DNA of 64,000 bases, taken from contig OZ059899.1 in assembly GCA_964057225.1 (NCBI GenBank), forward strand, positions 10,044,001-10,108,000. Direction: 5' to 3'. Positions 1-64,000 of this stretch are shown piece by piece. Position numbers and translations under genes: made by a program. The notes beneath the pieces were generated by a model. The model was not told where the DNA came from. It worked only from the letters and a program-made list of their open reading frames with translations, and made no database searches. Numbering within the stretch: position 1 is the stretch's first letter; every line of letters begins with the position of its first letter. This stretch comes from Auanema rhodensis (Eukaryota > Animalia > Nematoda).

Positions 1-3000
1 GAAAAGAACTAGTTTTTTCTATTTTAAAACAAACAATAATAAACAAAATGAAAAGATTGTTAGATATCCAATTTTAACTTATACATTTACTTCGATGAAG
101 AGCCTATTAGATTGAATTTTTATGTCTTACAGTTCTCCAACAGAACAGACTGATCCTGATTTTTCTACGATTACATAAAACTCTCGTTTGATATACAAAA
201 AGGAGAGGAATAACGTTTCCAGGATATCAATGATATCGAATCTAGTGATATTGTAGAAAAATGTAATGTCAGCTCCATAGTTTTTCTCTTAATTTCTCTC
301 ATCACAATAGTCTTAGTTTTTTTTCATAAGAGTTTCTGAAATCTTAGTTGAACAAGGCAGTATATATTTTTTTCTGGAATTCGAAAGCATTTGGGATGAA
401 AATTAGAAAGAAAAGAACTAGTTTTTCCTACTTTAAAACAAAAATAAGAAATAAAATGAAAAAGATTGTTAGATATCCAATTTAAACTTATACATTTACT
501 TCGATAAAGAGCCTATTAGTTTGAAATTTTATGTCTTACAGTTCTCCAACAGAACAGACTGATCCTGATTTCTCTATGATTACATAAAACTCTCGTTTGA
601 TATAAAAGCATATTGGATAGAAATTTCGAGAGCATTTTGGATGGAAATTAGAACGAAAAGAACTAGTTTTTTTCTATTTTAAAACAAACAATAATAAACA
701 AAATGAAAAGATTGTTAGATATCCAATTTTAACTTATACATTTACTTCGATGAAGAGCCTATTAGATTGAATTTTTATGTCTTACAGTTCTCCAACAGAA
801 CAGACTGATCCTGATTTTTCTACGATTACATAAAACTCTCGTTTGATATACAAAAAGGAGAGGAATAACGTTTCCAGGATATCAATGATATCGAATCTAG
901 TGATATTGTAGAAAAATGTAATGTCAGCTCCATAGTTTTTCTCTTAATTTCTCTCATCACAATAGTCTTAGTTTTTTTTCATAAGAGTTTCTGAAATCTT
1001 AGTTGAACAAGGCAGTATATATTTTTTTCTGGAATTCGAAAGCATTTGGGATGAAAATTAGAAAGAAAAGAACTAGTTTTTCCTACTTTAAAACAAAAAT
1101 AAGAAATAAAATGAAAAAGATTGTTAGATATCCAATTTAAACTTATACATTTACTTCGATAAAGAGCCTATTAGTTTGAAATTTTATGTCTTACAGTTCT
1201 CCAACAGAACAGACTGATCCTGATTTCTCTATGATTACATAAAACTCTCGTTTGATATAAAAGCATATTGGATAGAAATTTCGAGAGCATTTTGGATGGA
1301 AATTAGAACGAAAAGAACTAGTTTTTTTCTATTTTAAAACAAACAATAATAAACAAAATGAAAAGATTGTAAGATATCCAATTTTAACTTATACATTTAC
1401 TTCGATGAAGAGCCTATTAGATTGAATTTTTATGTCTTACAGTTCTCCAACAGAACAGACTGATCCTGATTTTTCTACGATTACATAAAACTCTCGTTTG
1501 ATATACAAAAAGGAGAGGAATAACGTTTCCAGGATATCAATGATATCGAATCTAGTGATATTGTAGAAAAATATAATGTCAGCTCCATAGTTTTTCTCTT
1601 AATTTCTCTCATCACAATAGTCTTAGTTTTTTTTCATAAGAGTTTCTGAAATCTTAGTTGAACAAGGCAGTATATATTTTTTTCTGGAATTCGAAAGCAT
1701 TTGAAATGAAAATTAGAAAGAAAAGAACTAGTTTTTCCTACTTTAAAACAAACAATAAGAAATAAAATGAAAAAGATTGTTAGATATCCAATTTTAACTT
1801 ATACATTTACTTCGATAAAGAGCCTATTAGTTTGAAATTTTATGTCTTACAGTTCTCCAACAGAACAGACTGATCCTGATTTTTCTACGATTACATAAAA
1901 CTCTCGTTTGATATACAAAAAGGAGAGGAATAACGTTTCCAGGATATCAATGATATCGAATCTAGTGATATTGTAGAAAAATGTAATGTCAGCTCCATAG
2001 TTTTTCTCTTAATTTCTCTCATCACAATAGTCTTAGTTTTTTTTCATAAGAGTTTCTGAAATCTTAGTTGAACAAGGCAGTATATATTTTTTTCTGGAAT
2101 TCGAAAGCATTTGGGATGAAAATTAGAAAGAAAAGAACTAGTTTTTCCTACTTTAAAACAAACAATAAGAAATAAAATGAAAAAGATTGTTAGATATCCA
2201 ATTTAAACTTATACATTTACTTCGATAAAGAGCCTATTAGTTTGAAATTTTATGTCTTACAGTTCTCCAACAGAACAGACTGATCCTGATTTCTCTATGA
2301 TTACATAAAACTCTCGTTTGATATAAAAGCATATTGGATAGAAATTTCGAAAGCATTTTGGATGGAAATTAGAACGAAAAGAACTAGTTTTTTCTATTTC
2401 AAAACAAACAATAATAAACAAAATGAAAAGATTGTTAGATATCCAATTTTAACTTATACATTTACTTCGATGAAGAGCCTATTAGATTGAATTTTTATGT
2501 CTTACAGTTCTCCAACAGAACAGACTTATCCTGATTTTTCTACGATTACATAAAACTCTCGTTTGATATACAAAAAGGAGAGGAATAACGTTTCCAGGAT
2601 ATCAATGATATCGAATCTAGTGATATTGTAGAAAAATGTAATGTCAGCTCCATAGTTTTTCTCTTAATTTCTCTCATCACAATAGTCTTAGTTTTTTTTC
2701 ATAAGAGTTTCTGAAATCTTAGTTGAACAAGGCAGTATATATTTTTTTCTGGAATTCGAAAGCATTTGGGATGAAAATTAGAAAGAAAAGAACTAGTTTT
2801 TCCTACTTTAAAACAAACAATAAGAAATAAAATGAAAAAGATTGTTAGATATCCAATTTAAACTTATACATTTACTTCGATAAAGAGCCTATTAGTTTGA
2901 AATTTTATGTCTTACAGTTCTCCAACAGAACAGACTGATCCTGATTTCTCTATGATTACATAAAACTCTCGTTTGATATAAAAGCATATTGGATAGAAAT

Positions 3001-6000
3001 TTCGAAAGCATTTTGGATGGAAATTAGAACGAAAAGAACTAGTTTTTTCTATTTTAAAACAAACAATAATAAACAAAATGAAAAGATTGTTAGATATCCA
3101 ATTTTAACTTATACATTTACTTCGATGAAGAGCCTATTAGATTGAATTTTTATGTCTTACAGTTCTCCAACAGAACAGACTGATCCTGATTTTTCTACGA
3201 TTACATAAAACTCTCGTTTGATATACAAAAAGGAGAGGAATAACGTTTCCAGGATATCAATGATATCGAATCTAGTGACATTGTAGAAAAATGTAATGTC
3301 AGCTCCATAGTTTTTCTCTTAATTTCTCTCATCACAATAGTCTTAGTTTTTTTTCATAAGAGTTTCTGAAATCTTAGTTGAACAAGGCAGTATATATTTT
3401 TTTCTGGAATTCGAAAGCATTTGGGATGGAAATTAGAAAGAAAAGAACTAGTTTTTCCTACTTTAAAACAAACAATAAGAAATAAAATGAAAAAGATTGT
3501 TAGATATCCAATTTAAACTTATACATTTACTTCGATAAAGAGCCTATTAGTTTGAAATTTTATGTCTTACAGTTCTCCAACAGAACAGACTGATCCTGAT
3601 TTTTCTACGATTACATAAAACTCTTGTTTGATATACAAAAAGGAGAGGAATAACGTTTCCAGGATATCAATGATATCGAATCTAGTGATATTGTAGAAAA
3701 ATGTAATGTCAGCTCCATAGTTTTTCTCTTAATTTCTCTCATCACAATAGTCTTAGTTTTTTTTCATAAGAGTTTCTGAAATCTCAGTTGAACAAGGCAG
3801 TATATATTTTTTTCTGGAATTCGAAAGCATTTGGGATGGAAATTAGAAAGAAAAGAACTAGTTTTTCCTACTTTAAAACAAACAATAAGAAATAAAATGA
3901 AAAAGATTGTTAGATATCCAATTTAAACTTATACATTTACTTCGATAAAGAGCCTATTAGTTTGAAATTTTATGTCTTACAGTTCTCCAACAGAACAGAC
4001 TGATCCTGATTTCTCTATGATTACATAAAACTCTCGTTTGATATAAAAGCATATTGGATAGAAATTTCGAAAGCATTTTGGATGGAAATTAGAACGAAAA
4101 GAACTAGTTTTTTCTATTTTAAAACAAACAATAATAAACAAAATGAAAAGATTGTTAGATATCCAATTTTAACTTATACATTTACTTCGATGAAGAGCCT
4201 ATTAGATTGAATTTTTATGTCTTACAGTTCTCCAACAGAACAGACTGATCCTGATTTTTCTACGATTACATAAAACTCTCGTTTGATATACAAAAAGGAG
4301 AGGAATAACGTTTCCAGGATATCAATGATATCGAATCTAGTGACATTGTAGAAAAATGTAATGTCAGCTCCATAGTTTTTCTCTTAATTTCTCTCATCAC
4401 AATAGTCTTAGTTTTTTTTCATAAGAGTTTCTGAAATCTTAGTTGAACAAGGCAGTATATATTTTTTTCTGGAATTCGAAAGCATTTGGGATGGAAATTA
4501 GAAAGAAAAGAACTAGTTTTTCCTACTTTAAAACAAACAATAAGAAATAAAATGAAAAAGATTGTTAGATATCCAATTTAAACTTATACATTTACTTCGA
4601 TAAAGAGCCTATTAGTTTGAAATTTTATGTCTTACAGTTCTCCAACAGAACAGACTGATCCTGATTTTTCTACGATTACATAAAACTCTTGTTTGATATA
4701 CAAAAAGGAGAGGAATAACGTTTCCAGGATATCAATGATATCGAATCTAGTGATATTGTAGAAAAATGTAATGTCAGCTCCATAGTTTTTCTCTTAATTT
4801 CTCTCATCACAATAGTCTTAGTTTTTTTTCATAAGAGTTTCTGAAATCTTAGTTGAACAAGGCAGTATATTTTTTTTTCTGGAATTCGAAAGCATTTGGG
4901 ATGAAAATTAGAAAGAAAAGAACTAGTTTTTCCTACTTTAAAACAAACAATAAGAAATAAAATGAAAAAGATTGTTAGATATCCAATTTAAACTTATACA
5001 TTTACTTCGATAAAGAGCCTATTAGTTTGAAATTTTATGTCTTACAGTTCTCCAACAGAACAGACTGATCCTGATTTCTCTATGATTACATAAAACTCTC
5101 GTTTGATATAAAAGCATATTGGATAGAAATTTCGGAAGCATTTTGGATGGAAATTAGAACGAAAAGAACTAGTTTTTTCTATTTTAAAACAAACAATAAT
5201 AAACAAAATGAAAAGATTGTTAGATATCCAATTTTAACTTATACATTTACTTCGATGAAGAGCCTATTAGATTGAATTTTTATGTCTTACAGTTCTCCAA
5301 CAGAACAGACTTATCCTGATTTTTCTACGATTACATAAAACTCTCGTTTGATATACAAAAAGAAGAGGAATAACGTTTCCAGGATATTAATGATATCGAA
5401 TCTAGTGATATTGTAGAAAAATGTAATGTCAGCTCCATAGTTTTTCTCTTAATTTCTCTCATCACAATAGTCTTAGTTTTTTTTCATAAGAGTTTCTGAA
5501 ATCTTAGTTGAACAAGGCAGTATATATTTTTTTCTGGAATTCGAAAGCATTTGGGATGAAAATTAGAAAGAAAAGAACTAGTTTTTCCTACTTTAAAACA
5601 AACAATAAGAAATAAAATGAAAAAGATTGTTAGATATCCAATTTAAACTTATACATTTACTTCGATAAAGAGCCTATTAGTTTGAAATTTTATGTCTTAC
5701 AGTTCTCCAACAGAACAGACTGATCCTGATTTCTCTATGATTACATAAAACTCTCGTTTGATATAAAAGCATATTGGATAGAAATTTCGAAAGCATTTTG
5801 GATGGAAATTAGAACGAAAAGAACTAGTTTTTTCTATTTTAAAACAAACAATAATAAACAAAATGAAAAGATTGTTAGATATCCAATTTTAACTTATACA
5901 TTTACTTCGATGAAGAGCCTATTAGATTGAATTTTTATGTCTTACAGTTCTCCAACAGAACAGACTGATCCTGATTTTTCTACGATTACATAAAACTCTC

Positions 6001-9000
6001 GTTTGATATACAAAAAGGAGAGGAATAACGTTTCCAGGATATCAATGATATCGAATCTAGTGATATTGTAGAAAAATGTAATGTCAGCTCCATAGTTTTT
6101 CTCTTAATTTCTCTCATCACAATAGTCTTAGTTTTTTTTCATAAGAGTTTCTGAAATCTTAGTTGAACAAGGCAGTATATATTTTTTTCTGGAATTCGAG
6201 AGCATTTGGGATGAAAATTAGAAAGAAAAGAACTAGTTTTTCCTACTTTAAAACAAAAATAAGAAATAAAATGAAAAAGATTGTTAGATATCCAATTTAA
6301 ACTTATACATTTACTTCGATAAAGAGCCTATTAGTTTGAAATTTTATGTCTTACAGTTCTCCAACAGAACAGACTGATCCTGATTTTTCTACGATTACAT
6401 AAAACTCTCGTTTGATATACAAAAAGGAGAGGAATAACGTTTCCAGGATATCAATGATATCGAATCTAGTGATATTGTAGAAAAATATAATGTCAGCTCC
6501 ATAGTTTTTCTCTTAATTTCTCTCATCACAATAGTCTTAGTTTTTTTTCATAAGAGTTTCTGAAATCTTAGTTGAACAAGGCAGTATATATTTTTTTCTG
6601 GAATTCGAAAGCATTTGAAATGAAAATTAGAAAGAAAAGAACTAGTTTTTCCTACTTTAAAACAAACAATAAGAAATAAAATGAAAAAGATTGTTAGATA
6701 TCCAATTTTAACTTATACATTTACTTCGATAAAGAGCCTATTAGTTTGAAATTTTATGTCTTACAGTTCTCCAACAGAACAGACTGATCCTGATTTTTCT
6801 ACGATCACATAAAACTCTCGTTTGATATACAAAAAGGAGAGGAATAACGTTTCCAGGATATCAATGATATCGAATCTAGTGATATTGTAGAAAAATGTAA
6901 TGTCAGCTCCATAGTTTTTCTCTTAATTTCTCTCATCACAATAGTCTTAGTTTTTTTTCATAAGAGTTTCTGAAATCTTAGTTGAACAAGGCAGTATATA
7001 TTTTTTTCTGGAATTCGAAAGCATTTGGGATGGAAATTAGAAAGAAAAGAACTAGTTTTTCCTACTTTAAAACAAACAATAAGAAATAAAATGTAAAAGA
7101 TTGTTAGATATCCAATTTAAACTTATACATTTACTTCGATAAAGAGCCTATTAGTTTGAAATTTTATGTCTTACAGTTCTCCAACAGAACAGACTGATCC
7201 TGATTTCTCTATGATTACATAAAACTCTCGTTTGATATAAAAGCATATTGGATAGAAATTTCGAAAGCATTTTGGATGGAAATTAGAACGAAAAGAACTA
7301 GTTTTTTCTATTTTAAAACAAACAATAATAAACAAAATGAAAAGATTGTTAGATATCCAATTTTAACTTATACATTTACTTCGATGAAGAGCCTATTAGA
7401 TTGAATTTTTATGTCTTACAGTTCTCTAACAGAAAAGACTGATCCTGATTTTTCTACGATTACATAAAACTCTCGTTTGATATACAAAAAGGAGAGGAAT
7501 AACGTTTCCAGGATATCAATGATATCGAATCTAGTGACATTGTAGAAAAATGTAATGTCAGCTCCATAGTTTTTCTCTTAATTTCTCTCATCACAATAGT
7601 CTTAGTTTTTTTTCATAAGAGTTTCTGAAATCTTAGTTGAACAAGGCAGTATATATCTTTTTCTGGAATTCGAAAGCATTTGGGATGGAAATTAGAAAGA
7701 AAAGAACTAGTTTTTCCTACTTTAAAACAAACAATAAAAAATAAAATGAAAAAGATTGTTAGATATCCAATTTAAACTTATACATTTACTTCGATAAAGA
7801 GCCTATTAGTTTGAAATTTTATGTCTTACAGTTCTCCAACAGAACAGACTGATCCTGATTTCTCTATGATTACATAAAACTCTCGTTTGATATAAAAGCA
7901 TATTGGATAGAAATTTCGAAAGCATTTTGGATGGAAATTAGAACGAAAAGAACTAGTTTTTTCTATTTTAAAACAAACAATAATAAACAAAATGAAAAGA
8001 TTGTTAGATATCCAATTTTAACTTATACATTTACTTCGATGAAGAGCCTATTAGATTGAATTTTTATGTCTTACAGTTCTCCAACAGAACAGACTTATCC
8101 TGATTTTTCTACGATTACATAAAACTCTCGTTTGATATACAAAAAGGAGAGGAATAACGTTTCCAGGATATCAATGATATCGAATCTAGTGATATTGTAG
8201 AAAAATGTAATGTCAGCTCCATAGTTTTTCTCTTAATTTCTCTCATCACAATAGTCTTAGTTTTTTTCATAAGAGTTTCTGAAATCTTAGTTGAACAAGG
8301 CAGTATATATTTTTTTCTGGAATTCGAAAGCATTTGGGATGGAAATTAGAAAGAAAAGAACTAGTTTTTCCTACTTTAAAACAAACAATAAGAAATAAAA
8401 TGAAAAAGATTGTTAGATATCCAATTTAAACTTATACATTTACTTCGATAAAGAGCCTATTAGTTTGAAATTTTATGTCTTACAGTTCTCCAACAGAACA
8501 GACTGATCCTGATTTCTCTATGATTACATAAAACTCTCGTTTGATATAAAAGCATATTGGATAGAAATTTCGAAAGCATTTTGGATGGAAATTAGAACGA
8601 AAAGAACTAGTTTTTTCTATTTTAAAACAAACAATAATAAACAAAATGAAAAGATTGTTAGATATCCAATTTTAACTTATACATTTACTTCGATGAAGAG
8701 CCTATTAGATTGAATTTTTATGTCTTACAGTTCTCCAACAGAACAGACTTATCCTGATTTTTCTACGATTACATAAAACTCTCGTTTGATATACAAAAAG
8801 GAGAGGAATAACGTTTCCAGGATATCAATGATATCGAATCTAGTGATATTGTAGAAAAATGTAATGTCAGCTCCATAGTTTTTCTCTTAATTTCTCTCAT
8901 CACAATAGTCTTAGTTTTTTTCATAAGAGTTTCTGAAATCTTAGTTGAACAAGGCAGTATATATTTTTTTCTGGAATTCGAAAGCATTTGGGATGGAAAT

Positions 9001-12000
9001 TAGAAAGAAAAGAACTAGTTTTTCCTACTTTAAAACAAACAATAAGAAATAAAATAAAAAAGATTGTTAGATATCCAATTTAAACTTATACATTTACTTC
9101 GATAAAGAGCCTATTAGTTTGAAATTTTATGTCTTACAGTTCTCCAACAGAACAGACTGATCCTGATTTCTCTATGATTACATAAAACTCTCGTTTGATA
9201 TAAAAGCATATTGGATAGAAATTTCGAAAGCATTTTGGATGGAAATTAGAACGAAAAGAACTAGTTTTTTCTATTTTAAAACAAACAATAATAAACAAAA
9301 TGAAAAGATTGTTAGATATCCAATTTTAACTTATACATTTACTTCGATGAAGAGCCTATTAGATTGAATTTTTATGTCTTACAGTTCTCCAACAGAACAG
9401 ACTTATCCTGATTTTTCTACGATTACATAAAACTCTCGTTTGATATACAAAAAGGAGAGGAATAACGTTTCCAGGATATCAATGATATCGAATCTAGTGA
9501 TATTGTAGAAAAATGTAATGTCAGCTCCATAGTTTTTCTCTTAATTTCTCTCATCACAATAGTCTTAGTTTTTTTCATAAGAGTTTCTGAAATCTTAGTT
9601 GAACAAGGCAGTATATATTTTTTTCTGGAATTCGAAAGCATTTGGGATGGAAATTAGAAAGAAAAGAACTAGTTTTTCCTACTTTAAAACAAACAATAAG
9701 AAATAAAATGAAAAAGATTGTTAGATATCCAATTTAAACTTATACATTTACTTCGATAAAGAGCCTATTAGTTTGAAATTTTATGTCTTACAGTTCTCCA
9801 ACAGAACAGACTGATCCTGATTTCTCTATGATTACATAAAACTCTCGTTTGATATAAAAGCATATTGGATAGAAATTTCGAAAGCATTTTGGATGGAAAT
9901 TAGAACGAAAAGAACTAGTTTTTTCTATTTTAAAACAAACAATAATAAACAAAATGAAAAGATTGTTAGATATCCAATTTTAACTTATACATTTACTTCG
10001 ATGAAGACCCTATTAGATTGAATTTTTATGTCTTACAGTTCTCCAACAGAACAGACTGATCCTGATTTTTCTACGATTACATAAAACTCTCGTTTGATAT
10101 ACAAAAAGGAGAGGAATAACGTTTCCAGGATATCAATGATATCGAATCTAGTGACATTGTAGAAAAATGTAATGTCAGCTCCATAGTTTTTCTCTTAATT
10201 TCTCTCATCACAATAGTCTTAGTTTTGTTTCATAAGAGTTTCTGAAATCTTAGTTGAACAAGGCAGTATATATTTTTTTCTGGAATTCGAAAGCATTTGG
10301 GATGGAAATTAGAAAGAAAAGAACTAGTTTTTCCTACTTTAAAACAAACAATAAGAAATAAAATGAAAAAGATTGTTAGATATCCAATTTAAACTTATAC
10401 ATTTACTTCGATAAAGAGCCTATTAGTTTGAAATTTTATGTCTTACAGTTCTCCAACAGAACAGACTGATCCTGATTTTTCTACGATTACATAAAACTCT
10501 TGTTTGATATACAAAAAGGAGAGGAATAACGTTTCCAGGATATCAATGATATCGAATCTAGTGATATTGTAGAAAAATGTAATGTCAGCTCCATAGTTTT
10601 TCTCTTAATTTCTCTCATCACAATAGTCTTAGTTTTTTTTCATAAGAGTTTCTGAAATCTTAGTTGAACAAGGCAGTATATTTTTTTTTCTGGAATTCGA
10701 AAGCATTTGGGATGAAAATTAGAAAGAAAAGAACTAGTTTTTCCTACTTTAAAACAAACAATAAGAAATAAAATGAAAAAGATTGTTAGATATCCAATTT
10801 AAACTTATACATTTACTTCGATAAAGAGCCTATTAGTTTGAAATTTTATGTCTTACAGTTCTCCAACAGAACAGACTGATCCTGATTTCTCTATGATTAC
10901 ATAAAACTCTCGTTTGATATAAAAGCATATTGGATAGAAATTTCGAAAGCATTTTGGATGGAAATTAGAACGAAAAGAACTAGTTTTTTCTATTTTAAAA
11001 CAAACAATAATAAACAAAATGAAAAGATTGTTAGATATCCAATTTTAACTTATACATTTACTTCGATGAAGAGCCTATTAGATTGAATTTTTATGTCTTA
11101 CAGTTCTCCAACAGAACAGACTTATCCTGATTTTTCTACGATTACATAAAACTCTCGTTTGATATACAAAAAGGAGAGGAATAACGTTTCCAGGATATCA
11201 ATGATATCGAATCTAGTGATATTGTAGAAAAATGTAATGTCAGCTCCATAGTTTTTCTCTTAATTTCTCTCATCACAATAGTCTTAGTTTTTTTTCATAA
11301 GAGTTTCTGAAATCTTAGTTGAACAAGGCAGTATATATTTTTTTCTGGAATTCGAAAGCATTTGGGATGAAAATTAGAAAGAAAAGAACTAGTTTTTCCT
11401 ACTTTAAAACAAACAATAATAAACAAAATGAAAAGATTGTTAGATATCCAATTTTAACTTATACATTTACTTCGATGAAGAGCCTATTAGATTGAATTTT
11501 TATGTCTTACAGTTCTCCAACAGAACAGACTGATCCTGATTTTTCTACGATTACATAAAACTCTCGTTTGATATACAAAAAGGAGAGGAATAACGTTTCC
11601 AGGATATCAATGATATCGAATCTAGTGATATTGTAGAAAAATGTAATGTCAGCTCCATAGTTTTTCTCTTAATTTCTCTCATCACAATAGTCTTAGTTTT
11701 TTTTCATAAGAGTTTCTGAAATCTTAGTTGAACAAGGCAGTATATATTTTTTTCTGGAATTCGAAAGCATTTGGGATGGAAATTAGAAAGAAAAGAACTA
11801 GTTTTTCCTACTTTAAAACAAACAATAAGAAATAAAATGAAAAAGATTGTTAGATATCCAATTTAAACTTATACATTTACTTCGATAAAGAGCCTATTAG
11901 TTTGAAATTTTATGTCTTACAGTTCTCCAACAGAACAGACTGATCCTGATTGCTCTATGATTACATAAAACTCTCGTTTGATATAAAAGCATATTGGATA

Positions 12001-15000
12001 GAAATTTCGAAAGCATTTTGGATGGAAATTAGAACGAAAAGAACTAGTTTTTTCTATTTTAAAACAAACAATAATAAACAAAATGAAAAGATTGTTAGAT
12101 ATCCAATTTTAACTTATACATTTACTTCGATGAAGAGCCTATTAGATTGAATTTTTATGTCTTACAGTTCTCCAACAGAACAGACTTATCCTGATTTTTC
12201 TACGATTACATAAACCTCTCGTTTGATATACAAAAAGGAGACGAATAACGTTTCCAGGATATCAATGATATCGAATCTAGTGATATTGTAGAAAAATGTA
12301 ATGTCAGCTCCATAGTTTTTCTCTTAATTTCTCTCATCACAATAGTCTTAGTTTTTTTTCATAAGAGTTTCTGAAATCTTAGTTGAACAAGGCAGTATAT
12401 ATTTTTTTCTGGAATTCGAAAGCATTTGGGATGAAAATTAGAAAGAAAAGAACTAGTTTTTCCTACTTTAAAACAAACAATAAGAAATAAAATGAAAAAG
12501 TTTGTTAGATATCCAATTTAAACTTATACATTTACTTCGATAAAGAGCCTATTAGTTTGAAATTTCATGTCTTACAGTTCTCCAACAGAACAGACTGATC
12601 CTGATTTCTCTATGATTACATAAAACTCTCGTTTGATATAAAAGCATATTGGATAGAAATTTCGAAAGCATTTTGGATGGAAATTAGAACGAAAAGAACT
12701 AGTTTTTTCTATTTTAAAACAAACAATAATAAACAAAATGAAAAGATTGTTAGATATCCAATTTTAACTTATACATTTACTTCGATGAAGAGCCTATTAG
12801 ATTGAATTTTTATGTCTTACAGTTCTCCAACAGAACAGACTTATCCTGATTTTTCTACGATTACATAAACCTCTTGTTTGATATACAAAAAGGAGACGAA
12901 TAACGTTTCCAGGATATCAATGATATCGAATCTAGTGATATTGTAGAAAAATGTAATGTCAGCTCCATAGTTTTTCTCTTAATTTCTCTCATCACAATAG
13001 TCTTAGTTTTTTTTCATAAGAGTTTCTGAAATCTTAGTTGAACAAGGCAGTATATATTTTTTTCTGGAATTCGACAGCATTTGGGATGAAAATTAGAAAG
13101 AAAAGAACTAGTTTTTCCTACTTTAAAACAAACAATAAGAAATAAAATGAAAAAGATTGTTAGATATCCAATTTAAACTTATACATTTACTTCGATAAAG
13201 AGCCTATTAGTTTGAAATTTTATGTCTTACAGTTCTCCAACAGAACAGACTGATCCTGATTTCTCTATGATTACATAAAACTCTCGTTTGATATAAAAGC
13301 ATATTGGATAGAAATTTCGAAAGCATTTTGGATGGAAATTAGAACGAAAAGAACTAGTTTTTTCTATTTTAAAACAAACAATAATAAACAAAATGAAAAG
13401 ATTGTTAGATATCCAATTTTAACTTATACATTTACTTCGATGAAGAGCCTATTAGATTGAATTTTTATGTCTTACAGTTCTCCAACAGAACAGACTTATC
13501 CTGATTTTTCTACGATTACATAAACCTCTCGTTTGATATACAAAAAGGAGACGAATAACGTTTCCAGGATATCAATGATATCGAATCTAGTGATATTGTA
13601 GAAAAATGTAATGTCAGCTCCATAGTTTTTCTCTTAATTTCTCTCATCACAATAGTCTTAGTTTTTTTTCATAAGAGTTTCTGAAATCTTAGTTGAACAA
13701 GGCAGTATATATTTTTTTCTGGAATTCGACAGCATTTGGGATGAAAATTAGAAAGAAAAGAACTAGTTTTTCCTACTTTAAAACAAACAATAAGAAATAA
13801 AATGAAAAAGATTGTTAGATATCCAATTTAAACTTATACATTTACTTCGATAAAGAGCCTATTAGTTTGAAATTTTATGTCTTACAGTTCTCCAACAGAA
13901 CAGACTGATCCTGATTTCTCTATGATTACATAAAACTCTCGTTTGATATAAAAGCATATTGGATAGAAATTTCGAAAGCATTTTGGATGGAAATTAGAAC
14001 GAAAAGAACTAGTTTTTTCTATTTTAAAACAAACAATAATAAACAAAATGAAAAGGTTGTTAGATATCCAATTTTAACTTATACATTTACTTCGATGAAG
14101 AGCCTATTAGATTGAATTTTTATGTCTTACAGTTCTCCAACAGAACAGACTGATCCTGATTTCTCTATGATTACATAAAACTCTCGTTTGATATAAAAGC
14201 ATATTGGATAGAAATTTCGAAAGCATTTTGGATGGAAATTAGAACGAAAAGAACTAGTTTTTTCTATTTTAAAACAAACAATAATAAACAAAATGAAAAG
14301 ATTGTTAGATATCCAATTTTAACTTATACATTTACTTCGATGAAGAGCCTATTAGATTGAATTTTTATGTCTTACAGTTCTCCAACAGAACAGACTGATC
14401 CTGATTTCTCTATGATTACATAAAACTCTCGTTTGATATAAAAGCATATTGGATAGAAATTTCGAAAGCATTTTGGATGGAAATTAGAACGAAAAGAACT
14501 AGTTTTTTCTATTTTAAAACAAACAATAATAAACAAAATGAAAAGATTGTTAGATATCCAATTTTAACTTATACATTTACTTCGATGAAGAGCCTATTAG
14601 ATTGAATTTTTATGTCTTACAGTTCTCCAACAGAACAGACTTATCCTGATTTTTCTACGATTACATAAACCTCTCGTTTGATATACAAAAAGGAGACGAA
14701 TAACGTTTCCAGGATATCAATGATATCGAATCTAGTGATATTGTAGAAAAATGTAATGTCAGCTCCATAGTTTTTCTCTTAATTTCTCTCATCACAATAG
14801 TCTTAGTTTTTTTTCATAAGAGTTTCTGAAATCTTAGTTGAACAAGGCAGTATATATTTTTTTCTGGAATTCGACAGCATTTGGGATGAAAATTAGAAAG
14901 AAAAGAACTAGTTTTTCCTACTTTAAAACAAACAATAAGAAATAAAATGAAAAAGATTGTTAGATATCCAATTTAAACTTATACATTTACTTCGATAAAG

Positions 15001-20322: not shown

Positions 20323-20395
20323 GGCCGCGTGGCGCAATGGATAACGCGTCTGCCTACGGAGCAGAAGATTGTAGGTTTGAATCCTGCCGTGGTCG
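20323..20395 (+). pseudogene. tRNA-Arg(ACG) with B-box C56T, probably inactive
   Basis: Full 73-nt body, but the T-loop reads GGTTTGAATCC instead of GGTTCGAATCC. Confidence 0.8.
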
Positions 20396-20399
20396 TAAA

Positions 20400-20406
20400 T
20401 TTTTTT
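20400..20406 (+). terminator. RNA Pol III terminator (T7); an equivalent T-run follows every tRNA copy
   Basis: GGTCG-TAAA-TTTTTTT lies 4 nt after the discriminator G73. Confidence 0.85.
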
Positions 20407-21339: not shown

Positions 21340-21412
21340 GGCCGCGTGGCGCAATGGATAACGCGTCTGCCTACGGAGCAGAAGATTGTAGGTTTGAATC
21401 CTGCCGTGGTCG
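21340..21412 (+). pseudogene. tRNA-Arg(ACG) with B-box C56T
   Basis: GGTTTGAATCC T-loop. Confidence 0.8.
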
Positions 21413-49162: not shown

Positions 49163-49235
49163 GGCCGCGTGGCGCAATGGATAACGCGTCTGCCTACGGA
49201 GCAGAAGATTGTAGGTTCGAATCCTGCCGTGGTCG
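49163..49235 (+). tRNA. tRNA-Arg(ACG)
   Basis: Identical to consensus copy. Confidence 0.96.
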
Positions 49236-50428: not shown

Positions 50429-50501
50429 GGCCGCGTGGCGCAATGGATAACGCGTCTGCCTACGGAGCAGAAGATTGTAGGTTCGAATCCTGCCGTGGTC
50501 G
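50429..50501 (+). tRNA. tRNA-Arg(ACG)
   Basis: Identical to consensus copy. Confidence 0.96.
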
Positions 50502-52096
50502 TAAATTTTTTTCATTTCACTTGTCATTTATAAAAATCGAATTTATCTTCTTCAACGATTATTTTTGCAATGTGTCATAAGAATTTCATAGTTGAACAAA
50601 ACGTTTTTTAAGAAGTTTTTTTGTTGTCAACATATATATTTTCCTGGAATTCGAAAGCATTTGGGATGGAAATTAGAAAGAAAAGAACTAGTTTTTCCTA
50701 TTTTAAAACAAACAATAAGAAATAAAATGAAAAAGATTGTTAGATATCCAATTTAAACTTATACATTTACTTTGATAAAGAGCCTATTAGATTGAAATTT
50801 TATGTCTTACAGTTCTCCAACAGAACAGACTGATCCTGATTTTTCTACGATTACATAAAACTCTCGTTTGATATAAAAGCATATTGGATAGAAATTTCGA
50901 AAGCATTTTGGATGGAAATTAGAACGAAAAGAACTAGTTTTTTCTATTTTAAAACAAACAATAATAAACAGAATGAAAAGATTGTTAGATATCCAATTTT
51001 AACTCATACATTTACTTCGATGAAGAGCCTATTAGATTGAATTTTTATGTCTTACAGTTCTCCAACAGAACAGACTGATCCTGATTTTTCTACGATTACA
51101 TAAAACTCTCGTTTGATATACAAAAAGGAGAGGAATAACGTTTCCAGGATATCAATGATATCGAATCTAGTGATATTGTAGAAAAATGTAATGTCAGCTC
51201 CATAGTTTTTCTCTTAATTTCTCTCATCACAATAGTCTTAGTTTTTTTTCATAAGAGTTTCTGAAATCTTAGTTGAACAAGGCCGTATATATTTTCCTAG
51301 AATTCGAAAGCATTTGGAATAGAAATTAGAAAGAAAAGAACTAGTTTCTTCTATTTTAAAACAAACAATAAGAAATAAAATGAAGAAGATTGTTAGATAT
51401 CCAATTTGAACTTATACATTTACTTTGATAAAAAGCCTATTAGATTGGAATTTTCTGTCTTACAGTACTCCAACAGAACAGACTGATCCTGATTTCTCTA
51501 CGATTACATTAGCCTCTCGTTTGATATAAAAAAAGAAGAGGGATAACGTTTCCAGGATATCAATGATATCGAATCTAGTGATATTGTAGAAAAATGTAAT
51601 GTCAGCTCCATAGTTTTTCTCTTAATTTCTCTCATCACAATAGTCTTAGTTTTTTTTCATAAGAGTTTCTGAAATCTCAGTTGAACAAGGCCGTATATAT
51701 TTTCCTAGAATTCGAAAGCATTTGGAATGGAAATTAGAAAGAAAAGAACTAGTTTCTCCTATTTTAAAACAAACAATAAGAAATAAAATGAAGAAGATTG
51801 TTAGATATCCAATTTGAACTTATACATTTACTTTGATAAAAAGCCTATTAGATTGGAATTTTCTGTCTTACAGTACTCCAACAGAACAGACTGATCCTGA
51901 TTTCTCTACGATTACATTAGCCTCTCGTTTGATATAAAAAAAGAAGAGGGATAACGTTTCCAGGATATCAATGATATCGAATCTAGTGATATTGTAAAAA
52001 AATGTAATGTCAGCTCCATAGTTTTTCTCTTAATTTCTCTCATCACAATAGTCTTAGTTTTTTTTCATAAGAGTTTCTGAAATCTTAGTTGAACAA

Positions 52097-52169
52097 GGCC
52101 GCGTGGCGCAATGGATAACGCGTCTGCCTACGGAGCAGAAGATTGTAGGTTCGAATCCTGCCGTGGTCG
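52097..52169 (+). tRNA. tRNA-Arg(ACG)
   Basis: Identical to consensus copy. Confidence 0.96.
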
Positions 52170-52702
52170 TAAATTTTTTTTATTTCACTTGTCATTTATA
52201 AAAATCGAATTTATCTTCTTCAACAATTATTTTTGCAATGTGTCATAAGAATTTCATAGTTGAACAAAACGTTTTTTAAGAAGTTTTTTTGTTGTCAACA
52301 TATATATTTTCCTGGAATTCGAAAGCATTTGGGATGGAAATTAGAACGAAAAGAACTAGTTTTTTCTATTTTAAAACAAACAATAATAAACAGAATGAAA
52401 AGATTGTTAGATATCCAATTTTAACTTATACATTTACTTCGATGAAGAGCCTATTAGATTGAATTTTTATGTCTTACAGTTCTCCAACAGAACAGACTGA
52501 TTCTGATTTTTCTATGATTACATAAAACTCTCGTTTGATATACAAAAAGGAGAGGAATAACGTTTCCAGGATATCAATGATATCGAATCTAGTGATACTG
52601 TAGAAAAATATAATGTCAGCTCCATAGTTTTTCTCTTAATTTCTCTCATCACAATAGTCTTAGTTTTTTTTCATAAGAGTTTCTGAAATCTTAGTTGAAC
52701 AA

Positions 52703-52775
52703 GGCCGCGTGGCGCAATGGATAACGCGTCTGCCTACGGAGCAGAAGATTGTAGGTTCGAATCCTGCCGTGGTCG
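52703..52775 (+). tRNA. tRNA-Arg(ACG)
   Basis: Identical to consensus copy. Confidence 0.96.
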
Positions 52776-53554
52776 TAAATTTTTTTCATTTCACTTGTCA
52801 TTTATAAAAATCGAATTTATCTTCTTCAACGATTATTTTTGCAATGTGTCATAAGAATTTCATAGTTGAACAAAACGTTTTTTAAGAAGTTTTTTTGTTG
52901 TCAATATATATATTTTCCTGGAATTCGAAAGCATTTGGGATGGAAATTAGAAAGAAAAGAACTAGTTTTTCCTACTTTAAAACAAACAATAAGAAATAAA
53001 ATGAAAAAGATTGTTAGATATCCAATTTAAACTTGTACATTTACTTCGATAAAGAGCCTATTAGTTTGAAATTTTATATCTTACAGTTCTCCAACAGAAC
53101 AGACTGATCCTGATTTTTCTACGATTACATAAAACTCTCGTTTGATATAAAAGCATATTGGATAGAAATTTCGAAAGCATTTTGGATGGAAATTAGAACG
53201 AAAAGAACTAGTTTTTTCTATTTTAAAACAAACAATAATAAACAGAATGAAAAGAATGTTAGATATCCAATTTTAACTTATACATTTACTTCGATGAAGA
53301 GCCTATTAGATTGAATTTTTATGTCTTACAGTTCTCCAACAGAACAGACTGATTCTGATTTTTCTATGATTACATAAAACTCTCGTTTGATATACAAAAA
53401 GGAGAGGAATAACGTTTCCAGGATATCAATGATATCGAATCTAGTGATACTGTAGAAAAATATAATGTCAGCTCCATAGTTTTTCTCTTAATTTCTCTCA
53501 TCACAATAGTCTTAGTTTTTTTTCATAAGAGTTTCTGAAATCTTAGTTGAACAA

Positions 53555-53627
53555 GGCCGCGTGGCGCAATGGATAACGCGTCTGCCTACGGAGCAGAAGA
53601 TTGTAGGTTCGAATCCTGCCGTGGTCG
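53555..53627 (+). tRNA. tRNA-Arg(ACG)
   Basis: Identical to consensus copy. Confidence 0.96.
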
Positions 53628-54818
53628 TAAATTTTTTTCATTTCACTTGTCATTTATAAAAATCGAATTTATCTTCTTCAACGATTATTTTTGCAATGTG
53701 TCATAAGAATTTCATAGTTGAACAAAACGTTTTTTAAGAAGTTTTTTTGTTGTCAATATATATATTTTCCTGGAATTCGAAAGCATTTGGGATGGAAATT
53801 AGAAAGAAAAGAACTAGTTTTTCCTACTTTAAAACAAACAATAAGAAATAATATAAAAAAGATTGTTAGATATCCAATTTAAACTTATACATTTATTTCG
53901 ATAAAGAGCCTATTAGTTTGAAATTTTATGTCTTACAGTTCTCCAACAGAACAGACTGATCCTGATTTTTCTACGATTACATAAAACTCTCGTTTGATAT
54001 AAAAGCATATTGGATAGAAATTTCGAAAGCATTTGGGATGGGAATTAGAAAGAAAAGAACTAGTTTTTCCTACTTTAAAACAAACAAAAAGAAATAAAAC
54101 AAAAAAAGATTGTTAGATATCCAATTTAAACTTATACATTTACTTTGATAAAGAGCCTATTAGATTGAAATTTTATGTCTTACAGTTCTCCAACAGAACA
54201 GACTGATCCTGATTTCTCTATGATTACATAAAACTCTCGTTTGATATAAAAAAAGGAGAGGAATAACGTTTCCAGGATGTCAATGATATCGAATCTAGTG
54301 ATATTGTAGAAAAATGTAATGTCAGCTCCATAGTTTTTCTCTTAATTTCTCTCATCACAATAGTCTTAGTTTTTTTTCATAAGAGTTTCTGAAATCTTAG
54401 TTGAACAAGGCAGTATATATTTTTTTCTGGAATTCGAAAGCATTTGGGATGAAAATTAGAAAGAAAAGAACTAGTTTTTCCTACTTTAAAACAAACAATA
54501 AGAAATAAAATGAAAAAGATTGTTAGATATCCAATTTAAACTTATACATTTACTTCGATAAAGAGCCTATCAGTTTGAAATTTTATGTCTTGCAGTTCTC
54601 CAACAGAACAGACTGATCCTGATTTCTCTATGATTACATAAAACTCTCGTTTGATATACAAAAAGGAGAGGAATAACGTTTCCAGGATATCAATGATATC
54701 GAATCTAGTGATATTGTAGAAAAATGTAATGTCAGCTCCATAGTTTTTCTCTTAATTTCTCTCATCACAATAGTCTTAGTTTTTTTTCATAAGAGTTTCT
54801 GTAATCTTAGTTGAACAA

Positions 54819-54891
54819 GGCCGCGTGGCGCAATGGATAACGCGTCTGCCTACGGAGCAGAAGATTGTAGGTTCGAATCCTGCCGTGGTCG
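54819..54891 (+). tRNA. tRNA-Arg(ACG)
   Basis: Identical to consensus copy. Confidence 0.96.
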
Positions 54892-56084
54892 TAAATTTTT
54901 TTTATTTCACTTGTCATTTATAAAAATCGAATTTATCTTCTTCAACAATTATTTTTGCAATGTGTCATAAGAATTTCATAGTTGAACAAAACGTTTTTTA
55001 AGAAGTTTTTTTGTTGTCAATATATATATTTTCCTGGAATTCGAAAGCATTTGGGATGGAAATTAGAAAGAAAAGAACTAGTTTTTCCTACTTTAAAACA
55101 AACAATAAGAAATAAAATGAAAAAGATTGTTAGATATCCAATTTAAACTTATACATTTACTTCGATAAAGAGCCTATTAGTTTGAAATTTTATGTCTTAC
55201 AGTTCTCCAACAGAACAGACTGATCCTGATTTTTCTACGATTACATAAAACTCTCGTTTGATATAAAAGCATATTGGATAGAAATTTCGAAAGCATTTTG
55301 GAATGGAAATTAGAAAGAAAAGAACTAGTTTCTCCTATTTTAAAACAAACAATAAGAAATAAAATGAAGAAGATTGTTAGATATCCAATTTGAACTTATA
55401 CATTTACTTTGATAAAAAGCCTATTAGATTGGAATTTTCTGTCTTACAGTACTCCAACAGAACAGACTGATCCTGATTTCTCTACGATTACATTAGCCTC
55501 TCGTTTGATATAAAAAAAGAAGAGGGATAACGTTTCCAGGATATCAATGATATCGAATCTAGTGATATTGTAGAAAAATGTAATGTCAGCTCCATAGTTT
55601 TTCTCTTAATTTCTCTCATCACAATAGTCTTAGTTTTTTTTCATAAGAGTTTCCGAAATCTTAGTTGAACAAAGCAGTATATATTTCTTTCTGGAATTCG
55701 AAAGCATTTGGGATGAAAATTAGAAAGAAAAGAACTAGTTTTTCCTACTTTAAAACAAAAATTAAGAAATAAAATAAAAAAGATTGTTAGATATCCAATT
55801 TAAACTTATACATTTACTTCGATAAAGAGCCTATTAGTTTGAAATTTTATGTCTTACAGTTCTCCAACAGAACAGACTGATCCTGATTTCTCTATGATTA
55901 CATAAAACTCTCGTTTGATATAAAAAAAGGAGAGGAATAACGTTTCCAGGATATCAATGATATCCAATTTAGTGATATTGTAAAAAAATGTAATGTCAGC
56001 TCCATAGGTTTTCTCTTAATTTCTCTCATCACAATTGTCTTAGTTTTTTTTCTCATAAGAGTTTCTGAAATCTTAGTTGAACAA

Positions 56085-56157
56085 GGCCGCGTGGCGCAAT
56101 GGATAACGCGTCTGCCTACGGAGCAGAAGATTGTAGGTTCGAATCCTGCCGTGGTCG
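56085..56157 (+). tRNA. tRNA-Arg(ACG)
   Basis: Identical to consensus copy. Confidence 0.96.
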
Positions 56158-57752
56158 TAAATTTTTTTCATTTCACTTGTCATTTATAAAAATCGAATTT
56201 ATCTTCTTCAACGATTATTTTTGCAATGTGTCATAAGAATTTCATAGTTGAACAAAACGTTTTTTAAGAAGTTTTTTTGTTGTCAACATATATATTTTCC
56301 TGGAATTCGAAAGCATTTGGGATGGAAATTAGAAAGAAAAGAACTAGTTTTTCCTATTTTAAAACAAACAATAAGAAATAAAATGAAAAAGATTGTTAGA
56401 TATCCAATTTAAACTTATACATTTACTTTGATAAAGAGCCTATTAGATTGAAATTTTATGTCTTACAGTTCTCCAACAGAACAGACTGATCCTGATTTTT
56501 CTACGATTACATAAAACTCTCGTTTGATATAAAAGCATATTGGATAGAAATTTCGAAAGCATTTTGGATGGAAATTAGAACGAAAAGAACTAGTTTTTTC
56601 TATTTTAAAACAAACAATAATAAACAGAATGAAAAGATTGTTAGATATCCAATTTTAACTCATACATTTACTTCGATGAAGAGCCTATTAGATTGAATTT
56701 TTATGTCTTACAGTTCTCCAACAGAACAGACTGATCCTGATTTTTCTACGATTACATAAAACTCTCGTTTGATATACAAAAAGGAGAGGAATAACGTTTC
56801 CAGGATATCAATGATATCGAATCTAGTGATATTGTAGAAAAATGTAATGTCAGCTCCATAGTTTTTCTCTTAATTTCTCTCATCACAATAGTCTTAGTTT
56901 TTTTTCATAAGAGTTTCTGAAATCTTAGTTGAACAAGGCCGTATATATTTTCCTAGAATTCGAAAGCATTTGGAATAGAAATTAGAAAGAAAAGAACTAG
57001 TTTCTTCTATTTTAAAACAAACAATAAGAAATAAAATGAAGAAGATTGTTAGATATCCAATTTGAACTTATACATTTACTTTGATAAAAAGCCTATTAGA
57101 TTGGAATTTTCTGTCTTACAGTACTCCAACAGAACAGACTGATCCTGATTTCTCTACGATTACATTAGCCTCTCGTTTGATATAAAAAAAGAAGAGGGAT
57201 AACGTTTCCAGGATATCAATGATATCGAATCTAGTGATATTGTAGAAAAATGTAATGTCAGCTCCATAGTTTTTCTCTTAATTTCTCTCATCACAATAGT
57301 CTTAGTTTTTTTTCATAAGAGTTTCTGAAATCTCAGTTGAACAAGGCCGTATATATTTTCCTAGAATTCGAAAGCATTTGGAATGGAAATTAGAAAGAAA
57401 AGAACTAGTTTCTCCTATTTTAAAACAAACAATAAGAAATAAAATGAAGAAGATTGTTAGATATCCAATTTGAACTTATACATTTACTTTGATAAAAAGC
57501 CTATTAGATTGGAATTTTCTGTCTTACAGTACTCCAACAGAACAGACTGATCCTGATTTCTCTACGATTACATTAGCCTCTCGTTTGATATAAAAAAAGA
57601 AGAGGGATAACGTTTCCAGGATATCAATGATATCGAATCTAGTGATATTGTAAAAAAATGTAATGTCAGCTCCATAGTTTTTCTCTTAATTTCTCTCATC
57701 ACAATAGTCTTAGTTTTTTTTCATAAGAGTTTCTGAAATCTTAGTTGAACAA

Positions 57753-57825
57753 GGCCGCGTGGCGCAATGGATAACGCGTCTGCCTACGGAGCAGAAGATT
57801 GTAGGTTCGAATCCTGCCGTGGTCG
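57753..57825 (+). tRNA. tRNA-Arg(ACG)
   Basis: Identical to consensus copy. Confidence 0.96.
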
Positions 57826-58358
57826 TAAATTTTTTTTATTTCACTTGTCATTTATAAAAATCGAATTTATCTTCTTCAACAATTATTTTTGCAATGTGTC
57901 ATAAGAATTTCATAGTTGAACAAAACGTTTTTTAAGAAGTTTTTTTGTTGTCAACATATATATTTTCCTGGAATTCGAAAGCATTTGGGATGGAAATTAG
58001 AACGAAAAGAACTAGTTTTTTCTATTTTAAAACAAACAATAATAAACAGAATGAAAAGATTGTTAGATATCCAATTTTAACTTATACATTTACTTCGATG
58101 AAGAGCCTATTAGATTGAATTTTTATGTCTTACAGTTCTCCAACAGAACAGACTGATTCTGATTTTTCTATGATTACATAAAACTCTCGTTTGATATACA
58201 AAAAGGAGAGGAATAACGTTTCCAGGATATCAATGATATCGAATCTAGTGATAATGTAGAAAAATATAATGTCAGCTCCATAGTTTTTCTCTTAATTTCT
58301 CTCATCACAATAGTCTTAGTTTTTTTTCATAAGAGTTTCTGAAATCTTAGTTGAACAA

Positions 58359-58431
58359 GGCCGCGTGGCGCAATGGATAACGCGTCTGCCTACGGAGCAG
58401 AAGATTGTAGGTTCGAATCCTGCCGTGGTCG
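58359..58431 (+). tRNA. tRNA-Arg(ACG)
   Basis: Identical to consensus copy. Confidence 0.96.
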
Positions 58432-59210
58432 TAAATTTTTTTCATTTCACTTGTCATTTATAAAAATCGAATTTATCTTCTTCAACGATTATTTTTGCAA
58501 TGTGTCATAAGAATTTCATAGTTGAACAAAACGTTTTTTAAGAAGTTTTTTTGTTGTCAATATATATATTTTCCTGGAATTCGAAAGCATTTGGGATGGA
58601 AATTAGAAAGAAAAGAACTAGTTTTTCCTACTTTAAAACAAACAATAAGAAATAAAATGAAAAAGATTGTTAGATATCCAATTTAAACTTGTACATTTAC
58701 TTCGATAAAGAGCCTATTAGTTTGAAATTTTATATCTTACAGTTCTCCAACAGAACAGACTGATCCTGATTTTTCTACGATTACATAAAACTCTCGTTTG
58801 ATATAAAAGCATATTGGATAGAAATTTCGAAAGCATTTTGGATGGAAATTAGAACGAAAAGAACTAGTTTTTTCTATTTTAAAACAAACAATAATAAACA
58901 GAATGAAAAGAATGTTAGATATCCAATTTTAACTTATACATTTACTTCGATGAAGAGCCTATTAGATTGAATTTTTATGTCTTACAGTTCTCCAACAGAA
59001 CAGACTGATTCTGATTTTTCTATGATTACATAAAACTCTCGTTTGATATACAAAAAGGAGAGGAATAACGTTTCCAGGATATCAATGATATCGAATCTAG
59101 TGATACTGTAGAAAAATATAATGTCAGCTCCATAGTTTTTCTCTTAATTTCTCTCATCACAATAGTCTTAGTTTTTTTTCATAAGAGTTTCTGAAATCTT
59201 AGTTGAACAA

Positions 59211-59283
59211 GGCCGCGTGGCGCAATGGATAACGCGTCTGCCTACGGAGCAGAAGATTGTAGGTTCGAATCCTGCCGTGGTCG
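59211..59283 (+). tRNA. tRNA-Arg(ACG)
   Basis: Identical to consensus copy. Confidence 0.96.
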
Positions 59284-59816
59284 TAAATTTTTTTCATTTC
59301 ACTTGTCATTTATAAAAATCGAATTTATCTTCTTCAACGATTATTTTTGCAATGTGTCATAAGAATTTCATAGTTGAACAAAACGTTTTTTAAGAAGTTT
59401 TTTTGTTGTCAATATATATATTTTCCTGGAATTCGAAAGCATTTGGGATGGAAATTAGAAAGAAACAAACTAGTTTTTCCTACTTTAAAACAAACAATGA
59501 GAAACAAAATGAAAAGATTGTTAGATATCCAATTTTAACTTATACATTTACTTCGATGAAGAGCCTATTAGATTGAAATTTTATGTCTTACAGTTCTCCA
59601 ACAGAACAGACTGATCCTGATTTCTCTATGATTACATAAAACTCTCGTTTGATATACAAAAAGGAGAGGAATAACGTTTCCAGGATATCAATGATATCGA
59701 ATCTAGTGATATTGTAGAAAAATGTAATGTCAGCTCCATAGTTTTTCTCTTAATTTCTCTCATCACAATAGTCTTAGTTTTTTTTCATAAGAGTTTCTGA
59801 AATCTTAGTTGAACAA

Positions 59817-63271: not shown

Positions 63272-64000
63272 TAAATTTTTTTCATTTCACTTGTCATTTA
63301 TAAAAATCGAATTTATCTTCTTCAACGATTATTTTTGCAATGTGTCATAAGAATTTCATAGTTGAACAAAACGTTTTTTAAGAAGTTTTTTTGTTGTCAA
63401 CATATATATTTTCCTGGAATTCGAAAGCATTTGGGATGGAAATTAGAAAGAAAAGAACTAGTTTTTCCTATTTTAAAACAAACAATAAGAAATAAAATGA
63501 AAAAGATTGTTAGATATCCAATTTAAACTTATACATTTACTTTGATAAAGAGCCTATTAGATTGAAATTTTATGTCTTACAGTTCTCCAACAGAACAGAC
63601 TGATCCTGATTTTTCTACGATTACATAAAACTCTCGTTTGATATAAAAGCATATTGGATAGAAATTTCGAAAGCATTTTGGATGGAAATTAGAACGAAAA
63701 GAACTAGTTTTTTCTATTTTAAAACAAACAATAATAAACAGAATGAAAAGATTGTTAGATATCCAATTTTAACTCATACATTTACTTCGATGAAGAGCCT
63801 ATTAGATTGAATTTTTATGTCTTACAGTTCTCCAACAGAACAGACTGATCCTGATTTTTCTACGATTACATAAAACTCTCGTTTGATATACAAAAAGGAG
63901 AGGAATAACGTTTCCAGGATATCAATGATATCGAATCTAGTGATATTGTAGAAAAATGTAATGTCAGCTCCATAGATTTTCTCTTAATTTCTCTCATCAC

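Follow-up and report, generated by a model that had tools for sequence, protein, structure and literature searches.

Satellites derived from 5S ribosomal DNA (rDNA) and from rDNA spacers are known, in which a gene array loses the gene in some of its units and the spacer remnant is amplified. In Entamoeba, the units of the transfer RNA (tRNA) gene arrays contain several different tRNA genes and have short tandem repeats in their spacers. These arrays are long and tandem, and their function is regarded as unclear (Clark et al. 2006 and Tawari et al. 2008, cited in PMC2888827). Arabidopsis chromosome 1 is described as carrying a tRNA array of 27 triplet units that grew by the duplication of multi-unit blocks via unequal crossover (PMC2886086), and satellites have also been derived from tRNA-related short interspersed elements (SINEs), that is, from parts of retroposed SINEs (for example PMC10702118). 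Among nematodes, Nippostrongylus brasiliensis is reported to have about 150 tRNA-Trp units of about 200 bp and 90 tRNA-Ser units in tandem (PMC5765664), and a preprint on Auanema rhodense counts 19,554 tRNA loci and places tRNA arrays in germline-restricted DNA (bioRxiv 10.64898/2026.08.27.747507). The subject of this paper is a stretch of 64,000 nucleotides from the nematode Auanema rhodensis (assembly GCA_964057225.1, contig OZ059899.1, positions 10,044,001 to 10,108,000 of the forward strand), referred to here as the window, in which units bearing a tRNA-Arg(ACG) gene are mixed with two classes of gene-less unit. Both nematode cases resemble the window in being head-to-tail, in combining one tRNA gene with a species-specific spacer and in reaching satellite scale. 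A term search of the two reports yields passages on uniform gene-bearing units and no mention of tRNA-less derivatives, a third short unit or mixed blocks.

We suggest, with a probability of roughly 0.6, that the window belongs to a satellite family built on a 607-bp tRNA-Arg(ACG) repeat. The gene-bearing unit (T) would have come first and the longer of the two gene-less units (L) would have arisen from it by deletion, and recombination of the satellite type and the duplication of blocks have since acted on the array. The short gene-less unit (S) occupies a less certain place in this history, as its junction is compatible with more than one direction of change.

Three nested classes of unit in a single array

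The window (1-64000, + strand) consists of a single unbroken head-to-tail tandem array, which extends past both window ends and has a G+C content of about 28-30% along its entire length. Unit boundaries were set by cutting at the anchor TTCGAAAGCAT, and it is this cut that defines the lengths and counts of the classes. It yields 162 whole units and two partial ones, an L unit at 1-379 and a further unit at 63666-64000. The whole units are of class S (245-246 bp, n=68), class L (407-411 bp, n=53) or class T (606-609 bp, n=41), and T is the only class with a tRNA gene. A preliminary description of the window, made from its letters, had proposed three nested monomer classes, and our decomposition agrees with it. 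The class consensuses share a 226-bp core, which in L and T is followed by a 163-bp module B; the 607-bp T unit continues from this core and module into a 73-bp tRNA and ends in a 3' flank and tail of about 145 bp. Only T possesses the tRNA with its 3' flank, and L corresponds to T minus a cassette of 199 bp. In S both the 163-bp module B and the tail of about 20 bp found in L are missing and a 21-bp S-specific tail is substituted, which gives a net difference between L and S of 163-164 bp instead of the loss of about 188 bp that had been put forward previously. The array is a noncoding satellite, its longest stop-free stretch being 103 codons, and a coding function was rejected.

The tRNA genes identified by ARAGORN number 41, one for each T unit. 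All are tRNA-Arg(ACG) on the + strand, the first begins at 20323 and none lies leftward of it; the Rfam tRNA score is 58.3 bits, against a gathering score of 29. The T units can thus be described as a tandem tRNA-gene array of head-to-tail units with a single isoacceptor. Their distribution divides the window in two, as the preliminary description had correctly seen: the units numbered 0-60 (380-19936) are 33 S and 28 L with no T, and to the right of 19937 tRNA-bearing units make up 41 of 101 in a mixture of all three classes. The same description went further in treating the array and its gene-less part as one continuous, polarised structure. The continuity is real; the polarity holds inside the window only and does not extend to a general structure, and the tRNA-free left third is a local domain, not the end of a polarised one.

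Within the tRNA-free domain there is a stretch with runs of S units (Table 1), which carry beta-type cores (see below), and one lone S-L pair sits between the first two of these runs. The runs lengthen as the first T unit is approached. SSLSSS segments are identical in neighbouring repeats of this stretch, which resembles very recent stepwise expansion. A further property of the unit tails is that 94 L and T tails, together with the tail of the partial first unit, contain an EcoRI site (GAATTC), which occurs in none of the S tails; an EcoRI digest would be expected to give a ladder near 409, 607, 655 and 852 bp.

Junctions of the gene-less units

One pair of breakpoints is common to all 53 L units. 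The 199 bp missing from them comprise tRNA bases 6-73 and 126 bp of the 3' flank, and the junction retains tRNA bases 1-5, whose pairing partners lie in the 3' acceptor strand of the tRNA itself. The junction takes two forms. In L-b, confined to four units (L133, L134, L146 and L147), it reads GGCCG/TATATAT followed by TTTTCC, where the slash marks the breakpoint, and the sequence on both sides is of T type. In L-a, which accounts for the other 49 of the 53 units, GGCAG stands with a longer T run, and the two forms differ by a few point and T-run changes. A single old 199-bp deletion in a T unit gave rise to L, the original junction surviving in the few L-b copies, and L-a was derived from the L-b type by mutation to GGCAG and extension of the T run.

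The cassette itself is informative in this respect. In every T unit an imperfect direct repeat of 25-32 bp, its two parts named DR1 and DR2, flanks the tRNA and the first 73 bp of the 3' flank at the same places. DR2, which lies in the cassette, corresponds in diverged form to the final 32 bp of module B; the alignment score is 30, and none of 500 shuffled sequences reached it. With this copy of the module B end inside it, the cassette is not a foreign insert. If L were ancestral and T had been formed by the insertion of a tRNA gene, as the rarity of the T form genome-wide might suggest, the target must by chance have held the five bases of the tRNA 5' acceptor strand and the supposed insert would carry a copy of the target's upstream sequence; nor is there a target-site duplication at the L breakpoints. 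On account of the first two of these demands we accept the direction from T to L, and insertion into L appears very improbable. The derivation of L from T by deletion, as the preliminary description proposed, is well supported by the sequence, with tRNA bases 1-5 at the junction, T-type flanks in L-b and the copy of the end of module B in the cassette.

Two other roles for the direct repeat were considered and rejected. Units of about 429-435 bp, the expected product of recombination between DR1 and DR2, are absent, and the two parts are therefore not the breakpoints of the L deletion; neither can they be the target-site duplication of an inserted tRNA, as there is no matching empty site. After DR2 come AACG and a T run, in faint resemblance to tRNA bases 2-5 joined to the terminator. 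The DR2 region could be a much older, decayed copy of a gene unit, the similarity beyond the repeat not being significant. No significant internal homology was found between the core and the rest of the unit.

It might also be supposed that the cassette has been cut out more than once between exactly the same breakpoints, one of them after the fifth base of the tRNA and the other 126 bp beyond the tRNA, and that the L-b units are young, independent deletions. L134 gives some reason to think so, since its junction lies between T-type sequences and, apart from a clean gap of 199 bp, it differs from its neighbour T135 at only five bases. However, the breakpoints show no microhomology or repeat that could drive recurrence, and a G-to-A change in the tail (CCTAG) is private to the four L-b copies and present in each, in spite of their sitting on cores that are 25 bases apart. 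Adjacent L-a and T units are equally close (4-5 bases apart outside the cassette), and local homogenisation of the flanks explains the likeness of L134 and T135 more simply. We therefore regard recurrent loss as improbable and prefer a single old deletion. Were recurrent loss true, it would point to site-specific breakage or excision tied to RNA polymerase III genes in a genome with programmed DNA breakage.

The S junction is of a different kind. All 68 S units carry one tail (two of them with a base change), which repeats in tandem, with divergence, the 21-24 bases that open the core. Tandem Repeats Finder (TRF) detects it as a period-24 repeat, and its sequence is slightly nearer to beta cores than to alpha cores. 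In S the core end is joined directly to this 21-bp copy of the core start, with no module B, tRNA cassette or L/T tail. The presence of a single tail sequence in every S unit indicates, on sequence grounds, that S has a single origin. The beta cores linked to S group in a clade with good support, at a distance of about 7% from the alpha cores found after L and T tails, which makes the S junction at least as old as the present L and T diversity. S may have come from L, from T, or may have been first, as a 245-bp satellite that already had this internal duplicate. The explanation we favour would derive it from a unit of L or T type, in which a deletion was repaired with a short copy templated on the adjacent flank, a repair that would resemble polymerase-theta end joining in nematodes. 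The ordered chain from T to L to S of the preliminary description is not sustained in its last step, S not being shown to follow L and its beta clade standing as far from alpha as it does.

Exchange in the core, block duplication and the tRNA genes

The core occurs as subtypes alpha, beta and gamma, about 7% apart, and its diagnostic sites are tied much more closely to the class of the unit before (Cramer's V 0.6-0.8) than to that of the unit in which the core lies (about 0.3). Cores that follow S are beta in 49 cases, mosaic in 10 and alpha in 8; those that follow L are alpha in 45 and mosaic in 8, with no beta, and those that follow T are alpha in 32, mosaic in 7 and beta in 2. Alpha and beta cores both occur in S, L and T units, and 49 of the 51 beta cores follow an S unit. 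Because the core type follows the tail of the preceding unit, the natural unit, judged from the sequence, is the tail together with the downstream core, an S-type tail with a beta core and L- and T-type tails with alpha cores.

The preliminary description had expected the L and S cores to nest within T diversity on a tree of the shared core. When the core tree was built and labelled by each unit's own class, no such nesting could be obtained and 19 changes were needed, against 8 when the labels were those of the preceding tail; the tree is unrooted. Such a tree is uninformative, as the type of the core follows the upstream tail. Its beta clade contains 51 cores that follow S and two others, and two smaller S-linked clades, gamma and alpha', nest in alpha. 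The mosaic alpha/beta cores show at least eight distinct switch points, which implies exchange inside the core. Module B is nearly uniform, an identical haplotype being present in 16 L and 12 T units, and a tree of module B and flanking core for L and T units (poorly resolved and also unrooted) has the two classes interleaved, with six changes. The mosaic cores, the linkage of core to tail and the shared B haplotypes are the marks of exchange between units by unequal crossover or conversion. Crossover or conversion in the shared core reshuffles the pairing of tail and core, and neighbouring units are homogenised regardless of class.

On the right side of the window, blocks of 4-13 units are repeated at a difference of about 0.02-0.6%, as compared with up to 7% between the cores in adjacent units. 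Multi-unit blocks are in other words more alike than neighbouring units, as is the case in higher-order repeats. Blocks of up to 13 units (5.66 kb) have been duplicated wholesale, and intact and defective tRNA genes alike are copied within blocks. The left side has seen the amplification of SL dimers, SLSLL blocks and S runs without the gene. The claim that gene-less derivatives amplify on their own is accordingly correct for the left side, in SL dimers and S runs, and fails for the right, where all three classes are copied jointly, in blocks that reach 5.66 kb.

Table 1. Coordinates of domains, example units and other features of the window
Feature	Position	Strand	Description
tRNA-free domain	1-19936	+	S and L only; mostly SL (655 bp) and SLL patterns to about 13.7 kb
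S-run sub-domain	13725-19527	+	S runs of 3, 3, 4 and 6 between single L units
Mixed domain	19937-64000	+	41 T, 35 S, 25 L; multi-unit blocks, e.g. ST, SLT, SLTT
Example T unit (T073)	25183-25788	+	Core 25183-25407, module B 25408-25567, tRNA-Arg(ACG) 25568-25640, 3' flank/tail to 25788; the 199-bp cassette absent from L is about 25573-25771
Example S unit (S072)	24937-25182	+	Last 21 bp (25162-25182) form the S tail
Example L-a unit (L065)	21807-22215	+	Junction GGCAG/TATATAT, then T7 and C
L-b pair (L133, L134)	50896-51710	+	Copies L146, L147 at 56552-57366
Direct repeat DR1/DR2	20291-20493	+	Imperfect; DR1 20291-20322 is the end of module B, DR2 20469-20493 lies in the lost cassette
First three tRNA genes	20323-20395, 21340-21412, 22602-22674	+	Common C-to-T at the invariant B-box C (GGTTTGAATCC)
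Tandem duplicate of a 13-unit, 5656-bp block (SLTSLTSLLTTST)	48120-59431	+	Copies 48120-53775 and 53776-59431, one base apart

The state of the tRNA genes is consistent with copying of this kind. Thirty-one of the 41 are identical and, to judge by their sequence, appear functional, with a T7-T8 run beginning four bases past the 3' end. The other ten are altered at conserved positions, the changes including C56T in the B box, U33A, a T-loop insertion and a broken anticodon stem. Behind these defects stand about five mutations, which were later copied with their blocks. U33A, together with a D-arm change, is found in T105, T123 and T152 (39269, 47047 and 59817), and the T-loop insertion with the broken anticodon stem in T101 and T119 (37400 and 45178). 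Defective alleles recur at equivalent positions in duplicated blocks, which indicates that block copying spreads dead genes. The three genes nearest to the tRNA-free domain, all with C56T, are on this sequence probably inactive; they also share a private variant in the 3' flank and make up a small local subfamily at the domain border. The number of segregating sites per site is 0.081 both in the tRNA and in its 3' flank, and because the two are equal we take it that there may be little or no selection on individual tRNA copies.

In an Rfam scan of the window no family besides tRNA exceeded its gathering score. A hidden RNA gene in the core or in module B was considered and rejected: both modules fold worse than shuffled sequence (z-scores of +1.2 for the core and +1.95 for B), so that neither is structured, and the only match was a weak one to Y RNA that we attribute to chance. 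This match lies in module B at 54282-54375, 54692-54785 and 55546-55639 and scores 23.4 bits, against a gathering score of 38.

Rival origins and comparison with known systems

Contigs of four public DNA runs were compared with positions 25107-25818 of the window (712 letters). The summed word depth of the unit sequence in public runs is very high, and the core, S tail, module B and tRNA cassette are all found at very high summed depth in runs of three organism labels. L junctions are present under all three labels; run X5 contains an intermediate allele, in which GCCG is followed by a T run of the L-a type, and an L-b-like junction occurs at low depth in run X12, which has a fourth organism label. 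The finding of the S tail and the L junctions in contigs assembled from independent runs argues that the three classes are not artefacts of assembly. It could be objected that the two 5.66-kb blocks are only one base apart and that no read has been shown to span such a block, and the mixture of classes or the near-identical blocks might then reflect a mis-assembled repeat. With the same junctions recovered from several independent runs, and with unit lengths and junctions regular throughout the window, we find this hard to credit.

The public runs also bear on the age of the array. The preliminary description saw in it a snapshot of the birth of a satellite, a view that does not fit well with the presence of the core, S tail, module B, cassette and L junctions in runs of three organism labels. 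This suggests a long-lived, recombining mixture and not a fresh, ordered birth, though the labels may be synonyms. Exact-pattern scans of metagenome contigs for an outgroup, using a core motif and a B motif, returned no matches.

In runs X5 and X8 there are dispersed tRNA-Arg(ACG) genes whose match to the window is limited to the tRNA with its T run (about 25563-25657), their flanks being unrelated. One of these is on a contig of 12,611 bases in X5, which matches 25568-25651 and has the gene in unique sequence, with unrelated flanks and a word depth of about 29. If that depth represents a single copy, module B would be present in X5 in the low thousands of copies, which is a rough estimate.

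The rival that has to be weighed most carefully is one of capture. A 245-bp satellite of the S type would have come first, a piece of about 380 bp with a tRNA-Arg gene and that gene's own flanks (module B and cassette) would have replaced part of the S tail to give T, L would have followed from T through loss of the cassette, and unequal crossover would later have mixed the classes. Pairwise diversity falls from the core (0.054) through module B (0.021) to the cassette (0.010-0.016; 0.0095 in the tRNA and 0.016 in the 3' flank), a nesting that capture predicts. Cores linked to S are more diverse than those linked to L and T, with values of 0.043 and 0.034 in the window overall and of 0.064 and 0.038 when the right side is taken by itself; sequence found in T only is the rarest module genome-wide, and the dispersed tRNA genes of X5 and X8 share the tRNA with the array and not module B or the 3' flank. 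The gradient in diversity is, on the other hand, expected from copy number alone, and both it and the gradient in abundance can be accommodated by a larger copy number together with the import of cores from the S lineage. The S tail has the look of something secondary, a partial duplicate of the core start, and of the three core clades linked to S, gamma and alpha' fall within the alpha diversity linked to L and T. Finally, the A. rhodense preprint reports many other arrays of satellite scale, built on different tRNA genes, and repeated amplification is simpler than repeated capture. Taken together, we consider capture unlikely, if worth keeping in mind, and continue to favour an origin from the gene-bearing unit.

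Several points nevertheless weigh against that origin and have kept its probability where it is. The trees are unrooted and have no outgroup, the nesting of diversity is what capture predicts, and T-only sequence is less abundant genome-wide than what L and T have in common, by a factor of about 5-7 when its depth is compared with that of module B in the public runs. The S junction requires two steps or a templated repair whichever direction is chosen. The order of units over long range is that given by the assembly, and the three organism labels share the identity profile of the source organism and may be strains or synonyms, so that their agreement is not evidence of great age.

The origin of most satellite DNA is unknown, and the interest of this array lies in the fact that a parent unit and two gene-less derivatives would coexist in it with their junctions still readable. 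It lets the route from gene array to satellite, and the respective roles of deletion, recombination and block duplication, be measured directly. There is also a methodological warning, in that a shared core linked to its physical neighbour can cause trees of cores labelled by class to mislead. If the array lies in germline-only DNA, it would bear on the question of why thousands of tRNA genes accumulate beyond the reach of somatic selection. The probes AT-1, XR-1, XT-1 and XT-2 used for fluorescence in situ hybridization in the A. rhodense preprint had no match in the window within six mismatches.

When set beside the systems described elsewhere, the window shares features with several and coincides with none. 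It has one tRNA per unit together with gene-less classes and so differs from arrays of the Entamoeba type, and TRF detected no short tandem repeats over the window except the 24-bp duplicate that forms the S tail. The Arabidopsis units all keep their genes, and the abstract of that report describes no gene-less satellite derivative, in contrast to the gene-less units found here. A SINE, or a satellite derived from one, was rejected as an identity for the array, since the unit has a complete tRNA gene with its own terminator and the dispersed copies share the tRNA only, in unrelated flanks. Literature searches found no comparable tRNA-derived satellite described in nematodes. The likeness to satellites derived from rDNA is one of route, with the difference that the source gene here is a tRNA and that gene-bearing and gene-less units are still in one array and exchanging. 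Both tRNA arrays in nematodes and the decay of gene arrays into satellites are known; the window would be a tRNA version of this process in which parent and derivatives are found in a single array.

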